Virus record (IMG/VR): IMGVR_UViG_3300036770_008729 | Span: 217,115 to 281,114 of that record | Direction: 5' to 3' (one strand) | Length of the DNA: 64,000 nucleotides | Shown: positions 28,540 to 47,917 of the stretch, piece after piece | Position numbering within the stretch: the stretch's first letter is position 1 | Layout: each line of letters opens with the position of its first letter | Notes under the pieces: generated by a model | What the model was told of the DNA's origin: nothing | Database searches by the model: none | The model's input: only the letters and a program-made list of their open reading frames with translations | Made by a program: the position numbers and the translations under genes

Positions 28540-28560
28540 ATATATTCAAAGAACTATTTG

Positions 28561-28636
28561 TCGTTAGGGTAGGACTCGAACCTACAATCTTTCGGGATTT
28601 TCACCCGAACGCTCTATCAAATTGAGCCACCTAACT
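28561..28636 (-). tRNA. Atypical tRNA (Phe-like, enlarged anticodon arm)
   Basis: Cloverleaf; TTCGGG-TGAAAAT-CCCGAA arm; A1:G72 mismatch; D loop lacks GG. Confidence 0.55.
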
Positions 28637-40892: not shown

Positions 40893-40906
40893 ATTTATAT
40901 TTACAG

Positions 40907-40978
40907 TAGCCCGTACGAGAATCGAACTCGTGTCTACACCGTGAAAGGGTGCCGTCCTAACCCCTAGACGAACGGGCC
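40907..40978 (-). tRNA. tRNA-Glu(TTC)
   Basis: Cloverleaf; near copy of 44884-44955. Confidence 0.9.
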
Positions 40979-42472: not shown

Positions 42473-43315
42473 ATGATTAGGTCTACTCTTGGAATAATAA
42501 AAGCAGCATCATCTGTATTAGTCGAATATTTTATAGTTGGTGGAGGTGGTAGTTCCGGTGGTAATGGAGGCGGCGGAGGTGGTGCTGGTGGAGTATTAAT
42601 AGGCAGTGAAACATTATTATCAGGAACTGTTTTAACCATATCTGTTGGAAGTGGAGGAACTCCTTATTCTAATGGAGGTCCTTCTAGTATTATAGGTACC
42701 GGACTTTCTAAAACATCTAGCGGCGGTGGTAGAGGTGGAACAAGAGATGGTTCACCCGGTCTTACAGGGGGAAGTGGAGGTGGAGGTTGTGCATCACAAT
42801 CTCCTCCTGCTGGTCCAGCTGGATTCGCCGGTGTATCTGGTCAAGGTAACTCAGGTGGTAGTGGAACTTCATATGCACTATCCACACAAGCTGCTGGTGG
42901 TGGAGGAGGTGGAAAAGGGTCAGTTGGAACCAATGGTTCGGCAACCCAAGGTGGTAATGGAGGAAATGGTTATTTATTAGTTTGGAATAACACAGGATAT
43001 GCTGGTGGTGGTGCTGGATCGGGTCTAAACTATAGTGGTTTTGGTGGAAAAGCTGGAACTGTACAAGCTGGATATGGTGGGGGTGGTCCTCAGAATGGAA
43101 CAAATGTAGGTAGAGTTAATAGCGGAGGTGGTGGGGGAAGTATCGCTAATGGTTTAGGTGGTGGTGATACTGGAGGAGGATTTGCTGGAGGTTCTGGTGT
43201 AGTTATAATTAGATTAAACACATTAGCTTCATCGACTACTGGTCTTCCTACTATATCAGCGAGTGGTTCTTATACTATATATACTTTCACAGGAGGAGGA
43301 ACAATAACAATATAA
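42473..43315 (+). CDS. Glycine-rich putative virion/fibre protein
   Basis: Paralog of 9585-10433. Confidence 0.7.
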   Translation: MIRSTLGIIKAASSVLVEYFIVGGGGSSGGNGGGGGGAGGVLIGSETLLSGTVLTISVGSGGTPYSNGGPSSIIGTGLSKTSSGGGRGGTRDGSPGLTGGSGGGGCASQSPPAGPAGFAGVSGQGNSGGSGTSYALSTQAAGGGGGGKGSVGTNGSATQGGNGGNGYLLVWNNTGYAGGGAGSGLNYSGFGGKAGTVQAGYGGGGPQNGTNVGRVNSGGGGGSIANGLGGGDTGGGFAGGSGVVIIRLNTLASSTTGLPTISASGSYTIYTFTGGGTITI

Positions 43316-43319
43316 TAAT

Positions 43320-43676
43320 ATGGCTCATTTTGCAAGAATAAATAATAATAATGAAGTAATAGAAGTTGTTGTAATAAATAACGGGGTTTTATTAGATGAT
43401 AATGGATTAGAATCCGAAGTTAAAGGCATTGAGTTCTGTAAAACTCTATATGGGTTAGATAGTAATTGGATACAAACTTCATATAATTCAAAATTCCGTG
43501 GAGTTTTTGCAGGTATAGGTTTTACCTATAATGTAGAGAAAGATGTTTTTACACCACCAAAGCCATTTGAATCTTGGTCATTAAGTAGTGATGGGTTTAC
43601 CTGGTTATCACCAGTTCCTTATCCAAGTGATGGTGGTTTTTATATTTGGAGTGAACAAAACTTAAATTGGATTTAA
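43320..43676 (+). CDS. MAHFA-type partner of Gly-rich protein
   Basis: Paralog of 9216-9569. Confidence 0.7.
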   Translation: MAHFARINNNNEVIEVVVINNGVLLDDNGLESEVKGIEFCKTLYGLDSNWIQTSYNSKFRGVFAGIGFTYNVEKDVFTPPKPFESWSLSSDGFTWLSPVPYPSDGGFYIWSEQNLNWI

Positions 43677-43681
43677 AATTG

Positions 43682-43754
43682 TCGGGAAGACAGGACTTGA
43701 ACCTGCGGCCTCCTGGTCCCAAACCAGGCGATCTACCAACTGATCTACTTCCCG
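43682..43754 (-). tRNA. tRNA-Pro(TGG)
   Basis: CCTGG-TTTGGGA-CCAGG. Confidence 0.9.
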
Positions 43755-43759
43755 AAAAT

Positions 43760-43834
43760 TGGCGGTCTATGACGGTTACGATCCGTCTACTTCTGCGTGA
43801 CAGGCAGATATGATAGCCACTTCACCAATAGACC
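43760..43834 (-). tRNA. tRNA-Asp(GTC)
   Basis: TCTGC-CTGTCAC-GCAGA; encoded CCA; T loop ATCGTAA. Confidence 0.9.
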
Positions 43835-43838
43835 TTAG

Positions 43839-43909
43839 TTGTCAGAGATGGAATCGAACCACCATTTTGTGAGCCAAAATCACATGTCCTCCCTTTAGAC
43901 GACCTGACA
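43839..43909 (-). tRNA. tRNA-Gln(TTG)
   Basis: TGTGA-TTTTGGC-TCACA. Confidence 0.85.
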
Positions 43910-43913
43910 GTAT

Positions 43914-43954
43914 AAAAACAAAAAACCCAGTTAATCTGAGACTAACTGGGTTTT
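43914..43954 (-). terminator. Attenuator terminator 1
   Basis: CCCAGTTAGT-CTCAG-ATTAACTGGG-TTTTTTGTTTT directly before tRNA-Gln. Confidence 0.85.
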
Positions 43955-43974
43955 ACAATGTTTATATTAATATC

Positions 43975-44067
43975 TTAAATTGTAAATACATAGTTAGTCC
44001 TTACGGCACGATCTTGGTCTTGCGGTTGAGGTTGATTAACTGGAGTATTTACAATCATATTTTTCAT
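43975..44067 (-). CDS. Leader peptide 1 (Gln/Pro/Asp sensor)
   Basis: MKNMIVNTPVNQPQPQDQDRAVRTNYVFTI*; antiterminator GACTAACT 43992-43999. Confidence 0.85.
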   Translation of the reverse strand: MKNMIVNTPVNQPQPQDQDRAVRTNYVFTI

Positions 44068-44247
44068 TATAGTATATATTAGAATATTTTCTTTTGTTTA
44101 GACAAATATAGAAAAAGTTTTAAATAAATTGAAATTTTTTTTAAAAAAGACAAAACAAAGAAAAAATAATTGATATATAGTGTATATATTGAAACCCAAT
44201 AAAAGAGGAATATATAAACGGGGTTCTTCTGAAATTCAATATTTATT

Positions 44248-44278
44248 TTTGAAAATTAAAAATTAGTAATTATATTTG
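44248..44278 (+). promoter_or_regulatory. Bacteroidota sigma-70-type promoter
   Basis: TTTG-N19-TATATTTG. Confidence 0.75.
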
Positions 44279-44282
44279 TAAA

Positions 44283-44363
44283 ATGAAAACAACATTAAAC
44301 ATAGCGTGTTATTATGAGGGCGGGAATCCAATTCCGGTCAGACTAACAATTGCAATGTTTTAA
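44283..44363 (+). CDS. Leader peptide 2 (Ile/Ala/Tyr/Glu/Gly sensor)
   Basis: MKTTLNIACYYEGGNPIPVRLTIAMF*; antiterminator GTCAGACT 44337-44344. Confidence 0.85.
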   Translation: MKTTLNIACYYEGGNPIPVRLTIAMF

Positions 44364-44385
44364 GTGTTTCATAAAACAAAACAAT

Positions 44386-44422
44386 AACCCAGTCTGATTA
44401 ATTAGATTGGGTTTTTTGTTTT
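44386..44422 (+). terminator. Attenuator terminator 2
   Basis: AACCCAGTCTGAT...ATTAGATTGGGTT-TTTTGTTTT. Confidence 0.85.
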
Positions 44423-44432
44423 AAACACATTT

Positions 44433-44526
44433 GGGAGGCTTCGCCACAAAGAGTCTGTAAAACTCTTCTTCGTTAACAAAATGGTGGCTGGTCTGGAGTT
44501 TAGAGGTTCGATTCTTCGGTCTCCCA
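44433..44526 (+). tRNA. tRNA-Tyr(GTA), non-canonical (no local D arm)
   Basis: AGAGT-CTGTAAA-ACTCT; acceptor GGGAGGC/GTCTCCC. Confidence 0.7.
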
Positions 44527-44534
44527 CAAAATAT

Positions 44535-44608
44535 AGGTGAGTAGCTTAGATGGTAAAAGCATGTGTCTTATACACACAAGATAGTGGGATCGTTACCCAC
44601 CTCACCTA
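44535..44608 (+). tRNA. tRNA-Ile(TAT)
   Basis: TGTGT-CTTATAC-ACACA; T loop ATCGTTA. Confidence 0.85.
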
Positions 44609-44615
44609 CAGAAAA

Positions 44616-44687
44616 GCGAGTATCGTATAATGGTCATTACTCCAGTCTTCCAAACTGGAGATGTCAGTTCGATTCTGACTACTCGCT
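44616..44687 (+). tRNA. tRNA-Gly(TCC)
   Basis: CCAGT-CTTCCAA-ACTGG. Confidence 0.9.
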
Positions 44688-44694
44688 CTAATTT

Positions 44695-44770
44695 GGGGTT
44701 ACATGTTCCAAGGCTTTGGCGAGACTGCTTTGCAAGCAATCTGTGGTGGGTTCGATTCCCACTAGCTCCA
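44695..44770 (+). tRNA. tRNA-Ala(TGC)
   Basis: G3:U70 pair; loop TTTGCAA; weak D arm. Confidence 0.8.
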
Positions 44771-44883
44771 CAAAAAAAATTGAAAAAAGATTTGGTAGAA
44801 TAAAAAACTCTTCTTATCTTTGTAATCAATTAAAACGAAGGTTGGTAATCTACTGTAAAACTCTGGTTTCCTTCTTAAATAAT

Positions 44884-44955
44884 GGTCCGTTCGTCTAGGG
44901 GTCAGGACGACACCCTTTCACGGTGTAGACACGAGTTCGATTCTCGTACGGACTA
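44884..44955 (+). tRNA. tRNA-Glu(TTC)
   Basis: ACACC-CTTTCAC-GGTGT; extra promoter TTTG-N20-TATCTTTG at 44791-44822. Confidence 0.9.
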
Positions 44956-44957
44956 CA

Positions 44958-45108
44958 GCTCATCAGAGTAATTAACTGATGAAGGAGGAACCGTCTTCGA
45001 AGCGGTAAAATGATTAGAGTGTAGGCTGCACACTGGCTCTTGAGTCTTAGACGCGGGTTTAAGATATCGGAGCCGGAGGTTAAAGGATCGTGTCCTTTTT
45101 AATCAGCA
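44958..45108 (+). ncRNA. Unidentified structured RNA (~150 nt)
   Basis: Helices CATCAG/CTGATG, ACCG/CGGT, TGATTA/TAATCA, GGCTC/GAGCC, TCTTAGAC/GTTTAAGA, AAAGGA/TCCTTT. Confidence 0.55.
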
Positions 45109-45162
45109 AATAAAAAATAAAGAGAGAAAAACTTCTTAATATATAGTAATATAATTAATACA

Positions 45163-45267
45163 ATGAAAAATATGAATCTAAATATCAATTTAATGCTCAC
45201 GGTGGTGAATACGTTATGTATTAGACCTACTGAGGGTGAATTTCTATTTAGAGAATTAAGTATGTAA
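45163..45267 (+). CDS. Leader peptide 3 (Asn/Met/Leu/Ile/Thr/Val/Cys/Arg sensor)
   Basis: MKNMNLNINLMLTVVNTLCIRPTEGEFLFRELSM*. Confidence 0.85.
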   Translation: MKNMNLNINLMLTVVNTLCIRPTEGEFLFRELSM

Positions 45268-45292
45268 AATATTTAACTTTAATAAAGTGATT

Positions 45293-45330
45293 AACCCTTA
45301 GATAGAAAAAATCTAAGGGTTTTTTGTTTT
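45293..45330 (+). terminator. Attenuator terminator 3
   Basis: AACCCTTAGAT-AGAAAAA-ATCTAAGGGTT-TTTTGTTTT. Confidence 0.85.
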
Positions 45331-45335
45331 ATACT

Positions 45336-45407
45336 GGAGTAGTAGCTTAATGGGGAAGCAATCGGCTGTTAACCGATAGATTATAGGTTCGAGTCCTATC
45401 TACTCCG
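45336..45407 (+). tRNA. tRNA-Asn(GTT)
   Basis: ATCGG-CTGTTAA-CCGAT. Confidence 0.9.
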
Positions 45408-45413
45408 CAACAC

Positions 45414-45487
45414 TGATGTGTAGCTCAAATGGTCAGAGCGCGAACCTGATAAGTTCGAGGTAGTGGGATCGTTACCCACCACATCAA
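45414..45487 (+). tRNA. tRNA-Ile(GAT)
   Basis: CGAAC-CTGATAA-GTTCG; T loop ATCGTTA. Confidence 0.9.
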
Positions 45488-45496
45488 CAAATAAAT

Positions 45497-45575
45497 GCCC
45501 CAATAACCGAGGTTGCCTTCTAAGCAACTAATCGTAACGGAGTGGAAGATATAGGTTCGAATCCTATTTGGGGTA
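45497..45575 (+). tRNA. tRNA-Arg(TCT), non-canonical (no local D arm)
   Basis: GTTGC-CTTCTAA-GCAAC; acceptor GCCCCAA/TTGGGGT. Confidence 0.7.
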
Positions 45576-45580
45576 CAAAT

Positions 45581-45661
45581 GCCGAGATGGCGGAACGGTA
45601 GACGCGCTAGTCTTAGGAACTAGTGTCTAAAGGCGTGAGGGTTCGATTCCCTCTCTCGGTA
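45581..45661 (+). tRNA. tRNA-Leu(TAG)
   Basis: CTAGT-CTTAGGA-ACTAG; variable arm. Confidence 0.9.
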
Positions 45662-45668
45662 CAAAAAT

Positions 45669-45741
45669 AGTTCTGTAGCTCAGAGGAACGAGCAACTCGC
45701 TTACATCGAGAAGGTCACTGGTTCGATCCCAGTCAGAACTA
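45669..45741 (+). tRNA. tRNA-Val(TAC)
   Basis: CTCG-CTTACAT-CGAG. Confidence 0.9.
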
Positions 45742-45748
45742 CAAATAT

Positions 45749-45821
45749 GACACTGTGTCTGAATGGCTTAGGTCCCGGTCTGCAAAATCGTGGTATGTCG
45801 GTTCGAATCCGACCAGTGTCT
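45749..45821 (+). tRNA. tRNA-Cys(GCA)
   Basis: Loop CTGCAAA; U73. Confidence 0.85.
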
Positions 45822-45828
45822 CAGATAA

Positions 45829-45900
45829 GCTTCTTAAGCATTAATGGTGATGCGCTAGTCTTGTAAACTAGAGAAATCGGATCGTTACCGGTAAGAAGCT
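45829..45900 (+). tRNA. tRNA-Thr(TGT)
   Basis: CTAGT-CTTGTAA-ACTAG; T loop ATCGTTA. Confidence 0.9.
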
Positions 45901-45906
45901 CAAAAT

Positions 45907-45978
45907 AGTTCTGTAGCTTAATGGTAGAGCACTTCCTTGACATGGAAGAGGTAGTCGGATCGTTACCGACCAGAACTA
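45907..45978 (+). tRNA. tRNA-Val(GAC)
   Basis: CTTCC-TTGACAT-GGAAG; T loop ATCGTTA. Confidence 0.9.
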
Positions 45979-45985
45979 CAAAAAT

Positions 45986-46076
45986 GCTCCAGTGGCGAAA
46001 CCTGGTTGAAACGCATAGGACTTAAAATCCTATACCCTTGAGGTAAACATTGTCGGTTCGAATCCGACCTGGAGTA
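45986..46076 (+). tRNA. tRNA-Leu(TAA)
   Basis: TAGGA-CTTAAAA-TCCTA; variable arm. Confidence 0.9.
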
Positions 46077-46082
46077 CAAAAT

Positions 46083-46152
46083 GCCGCGGCTTAGTGGAAA
46101 AGAACCTAATCTCATAAGTTGGGTTAAATGAGTTCGACCCTCATACGCGGTA
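46083..46152 (+). tRNA. tRNA-Met/Ile2(CAT), compact
   Basis: CTAAT-CTCATAA-GTTGG; short D arm. Confidence 0.7.
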
Positions 46153-46249
46153 CAAAAAATAAATTAAAAATATTTGGTAAATTCAAAACTTCTTCCTTTA
46201 TTTGTGTAAAATAAGAAAACAGAGAAAAACTTTTTAATATATAGAAATT

Positions 46250-46345
46250 ATGACAACAATTCGCTCACATAAACATTTTAGTAAATCGAGTAAGTGGTTT
46301 AATACCCGCAGGTTCGGTACTAATAGCGTATTGTTTAAATTTTAA
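46250..46345 (+). CDS. Leader peptide 4 (Arg/Ser/His/Lys/Phe/Trp sensor)
   Basis: MTTIRSHKHFSKSSKWFNTRRFGTNSVLFKF*; antiterminator GGTTCGG 46311-46317. Confidence 0.85.
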   Translation: MTTIRSHKHFSKSSKWFNTRRFGTNSVLFKF

Positions 46346-46371
46346 TTTAATTATAATAACAATATTCAATT

Positions 46372-46406
46372 AACCCGAACCGTAAAAAGTTCGGGTTTTT
46401 TGTTTT
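46372..46406 (+). terminator. Attenuator terminator 4
   Basis: AACCCGAAC-CGTAAAAA-GTTCGGGTT-TTTTGTTTT. Confidence 0.85.
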
Positions 46407-46417
46407 AAACATATTTT

Positions 46418-46490
46418 GGAATCTAAGCTAATCAGGTGAAAGCACTGGACTGAAAATCCAGAGAGTCCGGATCGTTACCGGAAGATTCCA
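46418..46490 (+). tRNA. tRNA-Phe(GAA)
   Basis: CTGGA-CTGAAAA-TCCAG; T loop ATCGTTA. Confidence 0.9.
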
Positions 46491-46495
46491 CAAAT

Positions 46496-46569
46496 GGTGA
46501 ATGTAGCTCAATTGGTAGAGCGCTTGATTGTGGTTCAAGAGGTAGCGGGATCGTAACCCGTCATTTACC
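46496..46569 (+). tRNA. tRNA-His(GTG)
   Basis: G-1/C73; CTTGA-TTGTGGT-TCAAG; T loop ATCGTAA. Confidence 0.9.
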
Positions 46570-46578
46570 CAAATATAC

Positions 46579-46649
46579 ACACGATACAGACAAGGTGTCG
46601 GTCAGGTCTCCAAAACCTCGATGGGTGAGTTCGATTCTTACATCGTGTG
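46579..46649 (+). tRNA. tRNA-Trp(CCA)
   Basis: AGGT-CTCCAAA-ACCT. Confidence 0.8.
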
Positions 46650-46668
46650 CAAAAAAAAGAATAAGAAA

Positions 46669-46686
46669 ATGAAACGAAAACGTTAA
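46669..46686 (+). CDS. Mini leader MKRKR* followed by hairpin 46686-46715
   Basis: ATG AAA CGA AAA CGT TAA after A-rich tract; precedes tRNA-Lys(TTT) and tRNA-Arg(ACG). Confidence 0.55.
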   Translation: MKRKR

Positions 46687-46727
46687 GTGATGACTAAAGC
46701 TATTAGGTCATCACTCATAAAAAATAT

Positions 46728-46800
46728 GACTTCGTAGCTTAGTAGGTAGAGCACCTGGCTTTTAACCAGGGGGTCGCGAGTTCGAATCTCGCCGGAGTCA
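46728..46800 (+). tRNA. tRNA-Lys(TTT)
   Basis: CCTGG-CTTTTAA-CCAGG. Confidence 0.9.
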
Positions 46801-46812
46801 CAAAAATATAAT

Positions 46813-46947
46813 GGGGATGTAGCTCAGTGGTAGAGTTTTAAAATATCTCTTTTGAGGTTTTACCTCTTGAAAAGGAGTGTTGATTAAAAGAGTTACTTCG
46901 TTTGAATTGAAATCAAAAGGTCGTGGGTTCGAATCCCACCATCCCCG
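46813..46947 (+). tRNA. tRNA (TGA anticodon) with ~60-nt hairpin inserted between D and anticodon arms
   Basis: GGGGATG/CATCCCC, G73; TTTGA-ATTGAAA-TCAAA. Confidence 0.65.
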
Positions 46948-46952
46948 CAAAT

Positions 46953-47025
46953 AGTCTTATCGTCTAATTGGAAAGACGTCTGAATACGAATCAGGAGATT
47001 GAGGGTTCGAGTCCTTCTAAGACTA
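46953..47025 (+). tRNA. tRNA-Arg(ACG)
   Basis: TCTGA-ATACGAA-TCAGG. Confidence 0.85.
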
Positions 47026-47029
47026 CAAT

Positions 47030-47113
47030 GGAGAGCGTCCGGATGGTCGAGGATGGCGTCTTGAAAACGTTCTGGGTGTAATAGCTTCTGGGGTTCGAAT
47101 CCCTAGCTCTCCG
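47030..47113 (+). tRNA. tRNA-Ser(TGA)
   Basis: Loop CTTGAAA; long variable region; G73. Confidence 0.85.
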
Positions 47114-47118
47114 CAAAA

Positions 47119-47204
47119 GGAAAATAAACTAATCAGGGTATTAGTCACGATTGGAAATCGTTGAGTTCGTTAATTTGGATGTGGTTCGAGTCCACTGTTT
47201 TCCG
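47119..47204 (+). tRNA. tRNA-Ser(GGA)
   Basis: ACGA-TTGGAAA-TCGT; G73. Confidence 0.8.
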
Positions 47205-47208
47205 CTAA

Positions 47209-47295
47209 GGAAGATTGACCGAGAGGTAAGGTACCAGTTTGCTAAACTGAGGTTAGGTCTTAAAGCCTAGACAGGATCGTTACCTGTATCTTCCG
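47209..47295 (+). tRNA. tRNA-Ser(GCT)
   Basis: CAGT-TTGCTAA-ACTG; T loop ATCGTTA. Confidence 0.85.
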
Positions 47296-47371
47296 CATTT
47301 TGATACAATCTATTTTTTTATAATAATTATAATATTATATATACATAACTAAAATAACTTTAGTTTAAATT

Positions 47372-47917
47372 ATGAAATACTTAAAATTATTTGAAGACTT
47401 AGAAGAAGACAACTCAAAATATCTTATCGAATTATCATCTGCTAATAGCAGAGGTATTATGGATATGACTAATCCATCAGAATCAATTAAAAAAGGTGCT
47501 GAAGAATGGTGGTCACTTAATGTTGATGCTATCGTTAAATTAGAAATGTATAATAGATACAAGAATTTATCAAATGATATTTTAACAAAACTAATTGGAT
47601 GTAGAAGTGATGTTTATAAATTTGGTCCAAGTTATCTAAGAGCTATTGGTGATTTATCTGAACAAGATATAAAAAGATTTAGATTTACCGGAACTTCTGA
47701 TAAAAACTGTGAAGATACTTATAAGATACTATCCAGAGTTGTAAAGAAGTTCAAGAGAATGAAATTAGACCAGAAAATTTCTTTTTTTGGTGAATTAGAA
47801 AGTGATGAGTTTTTAATTGTAAGAAATTCATATATCTATAAAGTAGTAGATGGGAAGAATCTAATGAATGAAGTCATGGGTATATCAAACAAATTAGATA
47901 TTATATCTCAGGAATAA
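47372..47917 (+). CDS. N-terminal-tag family protein
   Basis: MKYLKLFED. Confidence 0.6.
   Translation: MKYLKLFEDLEEDNSKYLIELSSANSRGIMDMTNPSESIKKGAEEWWSLNVDAIVKLEMYNRYKNLSNDILTKLIGCRSDVYKFGPSYLRAIGDLSEQDIKRFRFTGTSDKNCEDTYKILSRVVKKFKRMKLDQKISFFGELESDEFLIVRNSYIYKVVDGKNLMNEVMGISNKLDIISQE

Follow-up and report, generated by a model that had tools for sequence, protein, structure and literature searches.

Each of the four tRNA gene clusters of a 281 kb freshwater phage (IMG/VR record IMGVR_UViG_3300036770_008729) is preceded by a short leader open reading frame (ORF) that is written in the codons read by the downstream tRNAs and is joined to a strong terminator able to enter alternative RNA pairings. 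The most likely explanation is that each unit is a ribosome-mediated transcription attenuator whose output is a tRNA operon, such that the phage makes those tRNAs only when ribosomes run short of them. This is a classical bacterial switch in a role for which we found no precedent in full-text literature searches or in Rfam. Coordinates below are those of the window, the 64,000-nucleotide stretch of the record (positions 217,115–281,114) that was analyzed.

Anatomy of the four leader units

The four ORFs of 26–34 codons are each followed, 22–30 nt after the stop codon, by a hairpin and T-tract ending GGGTTTTTTGTTTT. This 14-mer occurs exactly four times in the 281 kb genome, always at these sites, with 0 matches to the reversed control, and an independent terminator scan ranks the same four hairpins as its top four. 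When compared with 1013 small ORFs of the genome, L1, L3, and L4 rank first for their own operon and L2 ties for third, with Monte-Carlo probabilities of 2e-6 (L1), 0.018 (L2), 2e-6 (L3), and below 5e-7 (L4). The match of leader to operon is real and far beyond chance, although L2 is the weakest of the four. Folding gives the three alternative pairings of a classical attenuator in all four leaders: region 1 (sensor segment) with region 2, region 2 with the terminator 5' arm (2:3), and the terminator itself (3:4). Complementarity of region 2 to the terminator 5' arm exceeds that of dinucleotide shuffles (Fisher P = 1.3e-5).

The L1 unit lies on the minus strand. A Bacteroidota-type promoter (TTTC-N20-TATATTTG) at 44103–44134 (-) precedes the 30-codon leader (MKNMIVNTPVNQPQPQDQDRAVRTNYVFTI) at 44067–43975 (-), within which the sensor run PVNQPQPQDQD occupies 44011–44043 (-), and 9 of its 11 codons are served by the operon. 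Region 2 (GGACUAACU) at 43992–44000 (-) pairs with the terminator 5' arm when the 3' arm is absent (duplex shuffle P = 0.006), and the terminator, an 11-bp stem plus T-tract, lies at 43912–43950 (-). Operon 1 at 43681–43909 (-) encodes tRNA-Gln(TTG), Asp(GTC), and Pro(TGG). The promoter class is enriched in the window, with 15 matches against 3.2 expected.

The L2 promoter (TTTG-N19-TATATTTG) at 44248–44278 (+) has a -7 box that ends 4 nt before the ATG, so the mRNA may be leaderless. The 26-codon ORF (MKTTLNIACYYEGGNPIPVRLTIAMF) at 44283–44363 (+) contains the sensor run IACYYEGG (ATA, GCG, TGT, TAT, TAT, GAG, GGC, GGG) at 44301–44324 (+), of which ATA matches Ile-TAT, followed by region 2 (GGUCAGACUA) at 44336–44345 (+) and the terminator at 44388–44422 (+). 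Two variants within region 2 in a related strain (44339 C>T and 44340 A>G) would, in our reading, keep pairing as G–U wobbles. Operon 2 at 44433–44956 (+) comprises a Tyr-like gene, Ile(TAT), Gly(TCC), Ala(TGC), an internal promoter at 44791–44822, and Glu(TTC).

The L3 leader of 34 codons (MKNMNLNINLMLTVVNTLCIRPTEGEFLFRELSM) lies at 45163–45267 (+), and its sensor run (NMNLNINLMLTVVNTLCIR) at 45169–45225 (+) has 19 codons that cover all 8 amino acids served by operon 3. The region 2 strand supported by covariation (CUACUGAGGGUG) is at 45227–45238 (+), and a conserved segment (UUUCUAUUUAG) at 45241–45251 (+) pairs with sensor nt 15–22 in the 1:2 pairing and may serve as a secondary antiterminator. 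The terminator is at 45295–45330 (+) and operon 3 at 45336–46153 (+), with Asn, Ile(GAT), Arg(TCT), Leu(TAG), Val(TAC), Cys, Thr(TGT), Val(GAC), Leu(TAA), and a tRNA-like gene with a CAU loop.

The L4 promoter (TTTG-N20-TTTATTTG), at 46173–46204 (+), is near consensus. The 31-codon ORF (MTTIRSHKHFSKSSKWFNTRRFGTNSVLFKF) at 46250–46345 (+) contains the sensor run RSHKHFSKSSKWF at 46262–46300 (+), in which 13 of 13 codons match and all 6 amino acids of operon 4 are represented. Region 2 (GGUUCGG) at 46311–46317 (+) changes together with the terminator arm in relatives, for example GAUUCGA with UCGAAU, and the terminator is at 46374–46406 (+). Operon 4 at 46418–47296 (+) encodes Phe, His, Trp, Lys, a tRNA-like gene with a long insert, Arg(ACG), Ser(TGA), Ser(GGA), and Ser(GCT).

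Most of these tRNAs are confirmed by ARAGORN and Rfam. However, Ala-TGC and Trp-CCA appear only at a relaxed ARAGORN threshold, and Arg-TCT is found only by Rfam, at 38.7 bits. The gene initially read as Met is an atypical tRNA-like gene with a CAU loop, and that read as Tyr (44433–44529) is a tRNA-like gene with a GUA loop and no D arm that no tool called; the function of both is unproven. The sequence-only reading, which had proposed ribosome-mediated attenuation with matching down to isoacceptors, is otherwise supported by every computational test it suggested, but three further details required correction. It had assigned a promoter to every operon, but L3 has no recognizable promoter within 110 nt upstream in this genome. 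The antiterminator supported by covariation in L3 is CUGAGGGU (45227–45238), whereas TTTCTATTTAG mainly pairs with the sensor segment. Finally, it had placed the complementary segment about 10–15 nt after each run, and a spacing of 11–13 nt from the sensor run to region 2 holds for L1, L2, and L4 but not for L3.

Homologous leaders in related phages

We collected 100 unique homologous leaders (88 peptides) from about 70 phage contigs, drawn from IMG/VR, JGI metagenomes, and two 640 kb phages; for L3, 59 unique homologues were found. Leader composition tracks operon content against permuted nulls (z = 11.5, and z = 14.6 across 80 leaders), and within contigs the leader's own operon ranks first in 24 of 26 and 37 of 40 cases, respectively. 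Seven leader types map onto pooled tRNA content: YE onto E13 Y8, Q onto Q8, SR onto S14 R6, PQD onto D16 P13 Q11, IGA onto G13 A8 I5, KHFW onto K12 F9 W8 H6, and NILVTCMR onto L100 N71 T58 V49 I47 R43 M19 C15. Where relatives split an operon, each part has its own matching leader (QQIQQQQ before Gln only, SSRSRSS before Arg/Ser), the homologues of L2 are split into a Tyr/Glu leader and an Ile/Gly/Ala leader, and a downstream leader lacks the amino acids served only upstream (in one such leader, L060, no Leu or Arg). The family members are related and sequence counts therefore overstate the number of independent events; the clearly independent changes are fewer, at least 5 arm classes and several operon splits.

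The antiterminator segment co-varies with its cognate terminator arm in 94 of 100 leaders (mean ddG -3.5 kcal/mol, P = 5.5e-17). Within the L3 family there are five arm classes with compensated region 2, in which 202 of 232 cells are paired against 176 when arms are permuted. The 1:2 pairing exceeds codon-order shuffles in 27 of 34 leaders (P = 2e-6). Synonymous codon choice also fits the anticodons of the leader's own operon, with 290 of 313 against 264.6 expected (z = 5.35), and ATA goes with Ile-TAT, ATY with Ile-GAT, AGR with Arg-TCT, and CGN with Arg-ACG in 34 of 37 cases. Sensor codons are enriched in rare synonymous codons (P = 1e-5). The frame stays open in all leaders (median chance 0.06 each), A occupies position -3 in 29 of 35, codons 2–3 are conserved, and the stop lies 22–36 nt before the terminator in 35 of 35. 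The architecture is absent from the negative controls, namely T4-like and T5 tRNA clusters examined with the same pipeline, the five scattered tRNAs of this genome, and 19 Bacteroidota tRNA clusters.

A model of tRNA supply and its alternatives

These observations lead us, with good confidence, to a model in which leader translation, termination efficiency, the kinetic order of folding, and the physiological trigger are inferred. Transcription would start at a Bacteroidota-type promoter or continue from the operon upstream, and a ribosome would translate the leader, the first two thirds of which are a run of codons read by the tRNAs encoded downstream. Just after the run, still inside the ORF, lies region 2. 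When decoding is fast the ribosome would run through region 2 to the stop codon, 1:2 would re-form behind it, and the terminator would form, so that the tRNAs are not made. When any sensor codon is decoded slowly because its charged tRNA is scarce, the stalled ribosome would cover region 1, region 2 would capture the terminator arm as it emerges, and RNA polymerase would read through into the operon. The new tRNAs would then decode the sensor codons and switch the unit off again, a negative-feedback homeostat for tRNA supply, one per operon, with OR-logic over 3–8 amino acids, several of which are sensed by a single codon.

Stall simulation and prefix folding behave as the model needs. With a ribosome footprint masked codon by codon, the antiterminator stays formable up to the last sensor codon (in L2, one codon further) and then drops sharply in L1, after the last Asp codon, in L2, and in L4, where it collapses immediately after the last Phe codon. 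Region 2 is held by region 1 in free RNA and released by a mid-run stall. However, equilibrium folding without a ribosome also gives 2:3 in three of four leaders, so the model depends on kinetic formation of 1:2 first. The stop codon lies 15–39 nt beyond region 2, and a terminating ribosome therefore does not mask region 2 as it does in trpL. In L3-type leaders the last sensor codons (Cys, Ile, Arg) abut region 2, and the stall profile there is only gradual. Amino-acid starvation would also trigger read-through, and extra tRNA would not help in that case. As for transcripts, one 151-nt metatranscriptome contig lies on Asn/Ile-GAT, with DNA carry-over not excluded, and nothing lies on the leaders.

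It is possible, although doubtful on present evidence, that the same hardware serves specifically as counter-defense, replacing exactly those tRNAs cleaved by host anticodon nucleases (PrrC, RloC, PARIS AriB, or colicin-like enzymes). The per-operon, per-codon resolution is what such a role would need, phage tRNAs are known to rescue infection from tRNA-cleaving defenses (PMC11464382; PMC12409363), and several tRNAs in the cluster have unusual structures. Nothing in the sequence points to nucleases, however, and the link remains speculation: all 20 amino acids are covered rather than only the known nuclease targets, the host and its defenses are unknown, and a plain supply-and-demand feedback explains the same data. 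An infection clock or starvation sensor, in which read-through reports global decay of the host tRNA pool or amino-acid starvation, appears somewhat less likely still. Attenuators such as trpL, hisL, and thrL probably respond to charged tRNA, so that uncharged and absent tRNAs would look the same to them, and host translation machinery decays during lytic infection. However, extra tRNA does not relieve amino-acid starvation, and if only a global signal mattered there would be no need for each leader to list its own operon's codons nor reason for split operons to acquire leaders restricted to their own subset.

Two further readings are very unlikely. AT-rich genomes contain many small ORFs, and without expression data the hairpins might be taken for ordinary constitutive terminators or insulators beside fortuitous or non-regulatory ORFs, but this is contradicted by the match probabilities of three leaders, the association across the family, the covariation of region 2 with its arm, the conserved frame, start context, and stop-to-terminator distance, and the lack of the pattern in control clusters. 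A translation-independent switch that binds tRNAs directly by codon–anticodon pairing, as T-box leaders read tRNA through a specifier codon, or a functional micro-peptide might be suggested by the conserved C-terminal halves of the peptides (RPSEGF.LF, NYVFTIS). Yet Rfam finds no T-box or any other family at E up to 1, there are 8–19 consecutive in-frame codons with a conserved ATG, open frame, and fixed stop position, and the conserved C-terminal codons coincide with region 2, which co-varies at the RNA level with the terminator arm even when the peptide changes (PTEG, PCSG, PESG, TAGSG).

Relation to known attenuators and phage tRNA clusters

The leader-peptide attenuators of amino-acid biosynthetic operons (trpL, hisL, pheL, leuL, and the multivalent thrL and ilvL) likewise have a short translated leader with a run of regulatory codons, an intrinsic terminator preceded by an overlapping antiterminator and anti-antiterminator, and read-through upon stalling; several amino acids can be sensed in one leader (thrL, ilvL), and rare codons appear to raise sensitivity, as with CUA in leuL. 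Here the output is tRNA genes rather than enzymes, the leader lists up to 8 amino acids and matches the operon's tRNA content down to isoacceptors, region 2 lies inside the ORF with the stop codon beyond it, and the units occur in a phage, in series and inside polycistronic tRNA arrays, without sequence or structure homology detectable by Rfam. The pheM leader of the Escherichia coli pheST operon appears to control a component of the translation apparatus according to the supply of charged tRNA, but that component is a synthetase (phenylalanyl-tRNA synthetase), a single amino acid is sensed, and the system is bacterial. In T-box riboswitches, which regulate translation-related genes, read-through of a terminator is also decided by the state of a particular tRNA and specified by a leader codon, but a T-box binds uncharged tRNA directly and needs no ribosome.

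Large phage tRNA sets, such as the T4 and T5 clusters and tRNAs that neutralize PARIS, are thought to keep translation going when host tRNAs are depleted or cleaved (PMC11464382; 10.1101/2024.01.02.573894), but those clusters are not known to be gated by codon-sensing leaders. Polycysteine leaderless small ORFs act as Cys-responsive attenuators in mycobacteria (bioRxiv 10.1101/834739), and these too are short, possibly leaderless sensor ORFs, rich in one codon, that control downstream genes through ribosome stalling; they sense a single amino acid and control protein-coding cysteine-related operons in a different phylum.

Genomic setting and the match between leaders and tRNA operons

The 281,114-bp virus record has a CheckV completeness of 94% and a GC content of 30%, and it is classed by IMG/VR as a provirus. 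Near-identical DNA occurs in subsurface and freshwater metagenomes, while the nearest database records are two uncultured phages of 635 and 642 kb (LR745206 and LR756502) that share only the tRNA region, at 77-79% identity. The sequence TTTG-N18-21-TAnnTTTG, taken here as the Bacteroidota-type promoter consensus, occurs 15 times in the window against 3.2 expected, a count that no shuffle reached, and the host is therefore probably a member of the Bacteroidota. Large ORFs in the window are mostly without Pfam matches; an ORF just upstream of the tRNA cluster, at 42474-43316 (+), encodes a protein dominated by Gly-rich repeats (GGGG and GGxGG runs).

The four small ORFs (L1-L4, the leaders of operons 1-4) read exactly as the sequence-only reading had described them. 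Each is followed by a strong hairpin and a T-tract ending GGGTTTTTTGTTTT, a 14-mer that occurs four times in the whole genome, all at these sites, and an independent terminator scan ranks these four first. ARAGORN and Rfam confirm the downstream genes for Gln, Asp, Pro, Ile-TAT, Gly, Glu, Asn, Ile-GAT, Leu-TAG, Val-TAC, Cys, Thr, Val-GAC, Leu-TAA, Phe, His, Lys, Arg-ACG and three Ser, whereas Arg-TCT is found by Rfam only and Ala-TGC and Trp-CCA appear only at a relaxed ARAGORN threshold. Together the four operons cover all 20 amino acids, split into the sets QDP, YIGAE, NIRLVCTM and FHWKRS.

Four of these tRNAs are structurally atypical, and standard tools miss them or barely detect them: a Tyr-like gene with a GUA loop and no D arm (44433-44529), which no tool calls and which showed no homology to the Tyr tRNAs of LR745206; a tRNA-like gene with a CAU loop on an 8-bp anticodon stem (46083-46153), read as Met; an Arg-TCT with a long variable arm (45497-45577); and an Ala-TGC with an odd D arm but G3:U70 (44695-44771). 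The leader codons (Tyr, Met, Arg-AGA, Ala) suggest that they are functional. An extra consensus Bacteroidota-type promoter sits inside operon 2 between tRNA-Ala and tRNA-Glu and is followed by a hairpin (together 44791-44875, +) containing CTGTAAAACTCT, the same sequence as the anticodon arm of the Tyr-like gene, which may be a remnant of a second Tyr gene. Directly after tRNA-Glu lies a 144-nt structured RNA (44957-45100, +; fold z = -2.5) that ends in a hairpin plus T run and probably terminates operon 2; it has no Rfam match and no similarity in the relatives examined. In operon 4 a perfect 10-bp hairpin between tRNA-Trp and tRNA-Lys (46687-46717, +) is not followed by a T run on this strand and may be a processing site or a terminator for the opposite strand. 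A further tRNA-like gene (46813-46950, +) has normal acceptor, D and T arms but an insert of about 85 nt before an anticodon-like hairpin (UGA loop); it gives a weak tmRNA hit below threshold and a fold z of -2.9, is partly similar in L141, L014 and L012 of the collected sequences, and in a DNA run other contigs carry a 20-nt ordinary anticodon arm in place of 46836-46920.

To ask whether the correspondence could be fortuitous, the best segment of each leader was scored against each operon's amino-acid set as log-odds against the genome's own amino-acid usage. The leaders L1-L4 score 15.5, 5.8, 14.9 and 15.4 nats on their own operons and at most 4.7 on the others. Among all 1013 ATG ORFs of 20-45 codons in the genome, L1, L3 and L4 rank first for their operon and L2 ties for third, and random peptides reach these scores with P = 2e-6, 0.018, 2e-6 and below 5e-7. 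L3 has no recognisable promoter of its own in this genome and may depend on read-through from operon 2. The -7 box of the L2 promoter ends 4 nt before the ATG (44271-44285), so L2 may be a leaderless mRNA, and a copy of a conserved 5'UTR motif (TTGATATATAG) lies about 100 nt further upstream, at about 44165-44185, before a TTG-start small ORF.

Alternative RNA pairings and signs of translation

The full-length leaders fold with the terminator (3:4) and with a long hairpin that joins the sensor segment to a segment just after it (1:2). If the terminator 3' arm is withheld, the 5' arm pairs in all four cases with that same segment (region 2), which lies at nt 68-76, 54-62, 65-76 and 62-68 from the AUG, inside the ORF. 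This 2:3 complementarity beats dinucleotide shuffles with individual P values of 0.006, 0.078, 0.002 and 0.010 (Fisher combination 1.3e-5), and the 1:2 pairing beats codon-order shuffles in 27 of 34 family members (P = 2e-6). When a 28-nt ribosome footprint was masked at every codon in turn, the modelled capture of the terminator arm stayed at 0.68-0.88 for stalls up to the last sensor codon, or one codon beyond it in L2, and then fell sharply, to 0.01-0.06 in L2 and L4 and to 0.46 and then 0.12-0.38 in L1. Before region 3 is transcribed, region 2 is paired upstream with probability 0.5-0.79 in free RNA, and with probability 0.03-0.32 when a ribosome is stalled mid-run. It might be expected that the last sensor codon would always sit one half-footprint (10-13 nt) before region 2, but this spacing holds for L1, L2 and L4 and not for the L3 type.

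Several features of the leaders are consistent with translation. The frame stays open in every family member, although shuffled leaders keep it open with a median probability of 0.06; A occupies position -3 in 29 of 35 leaders; codons 2-3 are nearly always AAA/AGA/ACA followed by ACA; and the stop codon always lies 22-36 nt before the terminator. These features would fit the Shine-Dalgarno-poor, A-rich initiation that appears to characterize Bacteroidota, but they do not prove translation, and the RNA data searched gave no usable coverage of the leaders. The window's sensor codons are also enriched in rare synonymous codons, with 10 G-ending codons against 3.1 expected (P = 3e-4) and a summed log usage of P = 1e-5, a bias that is either tuning for sensitivity, as may occur in leuL, or a by-product of the need to build helices.

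Coevolution of leaders and operons in related phages

The two huge phages carry homologous units with the same layout of promoter, a conserved 5'UTR motif (TTTTAATATATA), ORF, region 2, terminator and tRNAs. Pattern scans of IMG/VR and of JGI metagenomes, the latter finding 67 contigs, brought the set to 100 unique leader sequences (88 peptides), of which 80 have at least two downstream tRNAs recovered, from 53 loci. Leader composition tracks operon content: the summed diagonal score is 386 against 148 +/- 21 on permutation (z = 11.5), and on the larger set 865 against 428 +/- 30 (z = 14.6). Within contigs that carry several units, a leader's own operon ranks first in 24 of 26 cases (7 expected) and in 37 of 40 (13 expected), and seven leader types map cleanly onto pooled tRNA content. 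Sequence counts overstate independent events, however, because the phages are related.

The most telling cases are operons that are arranged differently in different phages. In LR745206 and two other phages the Gln genes sit behind their own leader, rich in Gln codons (QQIQQQQ, QFQQQQ, SQYQQQQQ), while in LR756502 and others the window's operon 4 is divided into Phe/His/Trp/Lys behind KHKHFSK.NKWF and Arg/Ser behind SSRSRSS. The window's operon 2 corresponds to two units, Tyr/Glu behind YYYEAYEE and Ile/Gly/Ala behind IAIIGGGAGAG. In L060, another of the collected sequences, the L3-type operon is divided, and the internal leader (TNTVNINVITITNCVNNTT) lacks exactly the Leu and Arg codons whose tRNAs lie upstream of it. 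In LR756502 (L002, 6227-6430) a 67-codon ORF is inserted between the L3-type terminator and the first tRNA, so in this phage the attenuator would also gate a small protein. In the 508-kb record IMGVR_UViG_3300049793_000366, downstream of 8465, a tRNA with anticodon TTA (an ochre suppressor) sits inside the Lys/His/Phe/Trp operon, which raises the question whether leaders of recoded phages use the reassigned stop codon as a sensor; the ORF calling used here would have cut such a leader short.

Each leader binds its own terminator 5' arm better than the arms of other leaders in 30 of 35 cases (P = 3e-7) and, in the full set, in 94 of 100, with mean ddG -3.5 kcal/mol (P = 5.5e-17). Within the homologous L3 family, which was selected on the sensor segment only, the arm occurs in five classes (CCCUCAG, CCCUUAG, CCCGAAC, CCCAGAU and CCCAAUU), and each class faces a matching region 2 (CUGAGGG, GUUCGGG, AUCUGGG or GUUGGG). 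Given that a MAFFT alignment of L3 leaders misplaced region 2 in sequences with indels, pairs were counted by GGG/CCC anchoring instead of by column, which gave 46 of 52 cells paired against 31.7 with arms permuted and, in the larger set, 202 of 232 against 176 (P at most 1e-4 in both). The encoded peptide changes freely at these positions (PTEG, PCEG, PCSG, PESG, TAGSG), so the constraint is on the RNA. The correspondence extends to isoacceptors: of 313 sensor codons for degenerate amino acids, 290 can be read by an anticodon of the leader's own operon under strict wobble, where genome synonymous usage predicts 264.6 (z = 5.35), and ATA goes with Ile-TAT, ATY with Ile-GAT, AGR with Arg-TCT and CGN with Arg-ACG in 34 of 37 cases.

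This architecture was absent from the comparison sets. The five tRNAs scattered elsewhere in the genome have no leader or terminator; two isolated tRNAs, each with its own consensus promoter and no leader, are a tRNA-Phe with the unusual anticodon AAA next to the end of an integrase-like ORF (28560-28636, -) and a second tRNA-Glu(TTC) (40906-40978, -). The tRNA clusters of a T4-like phage and of T5 give no unit and no matching small ORF with the same pipeline, and none of the 40 cellular-genome contigs that share the 18-nt core has the architecture, all being chance matches. The 19 multi-tRNA clusters from four Bacteroidota genomes (Aquimarina, Flavobacterium, a Chitinophagaceae MAG, Xylanibacter) show only ordinary upstream-gene terminators, with match scores of 4.5 nats or less, although this sample is too small to exclude a cellular origin.

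Proposed mechanism and comparison with known attenuators

Chance ORFs with constitutive terminators, T-box-like direct tRNA binding and functional micro-peptides were considered as alternative accounts and rejected. Within the attenuation account, the trigger in nature could be host tRNA decay, codon demand, anticodon nucleases or starvation. The weakest step of the mechanism concerns the unstalled state. At equilibrium and without a ribosome, three of the four leaders would also form 2:3, and the stop codon lies 15-39 nt beyond region 2, so that in the model a ribosome at the stop leaves region 2 free. Termination therefore has to rest on timing, with both strands of 1:2 available behind the moving ribosome before region 3 leaves the polymerase, and this timing argument is inference.

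It is likely, though leader translation, termination and the response to scarce charged tRNA are inferred from sequence, that these units represent the first case of tRNA genes controlled by leader-peptide attenuation: a modular, codon-resolved tRNA homeostat in which each operon's leader is a translated table of contents of the tRNAs behind it. No description of leader-peptide control of tRNA genes in phages or cells was found in full-text searches over 8.1 million PMC papers and 0.36 million preprints, which do not cover subscription-only literature. On this reading the family is widespread in a clade of large and huge (55 kb fragments to 640 kb) freshwater and subsurface phages with Bacteroidota-type promoters and evolves by splitting leader and operon together, and, if it is confirmed, phages measure their own decoding capacity codon by codon during infection and top up only what is short.

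How phages regulate their often large tRNA sets is essentially unknown, and the debate over why they carry them (codon-usage compensation, host tRNA decay, or escape from anticodon nucleases) has lacked a handle. These leaders are such a handle, and they state, in the phage's own sequence, which codons it treats as limiting. They can also be used to annotate aberrant tRNA-like genes that standard tools miss, as the Tyr and Met codons point here to the GUA-loop and CAU-loop genes, and they give a signature for finding this phage clade in metagenomes. They would offer natural, compact, codon-specific biosensors for synthetic biology.

The anatomy of the units is that of classical leader-peptide attenuators in each defining feature that could be examined: a short ORF with a usable start, a run of codons cognate to what the operon supplies, an intrinsic terminator before the regulated genes, a mutually exclusive antiterminator that uses the terminator 5' arm, and an anti-antiterminator that overlaps the regulatory codons, so that a stalled ribosome would free region 2. 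The exception is the masking of region 2 by the terminating ribosome, as in trpL. A covariance-model search of 43500-47500 at E up to 1 gave only tRNA-clan hits and chance hits, none of them on the leaders, and thus no match to the Rfam Thr, Leu, Trp, His and Phe leaders or to the T-box (RF00230). The units differ in what they control, which is tRNA genes, and would extend leader-peptide attenuation from metabolic genes to the decoding machinery itself, with multivalent sensing of up to eight amino acids in one leader. They also differ in the resulting logic, because the product of read-through is the molecule whose shortage caused the stall, and the loop closes directly.
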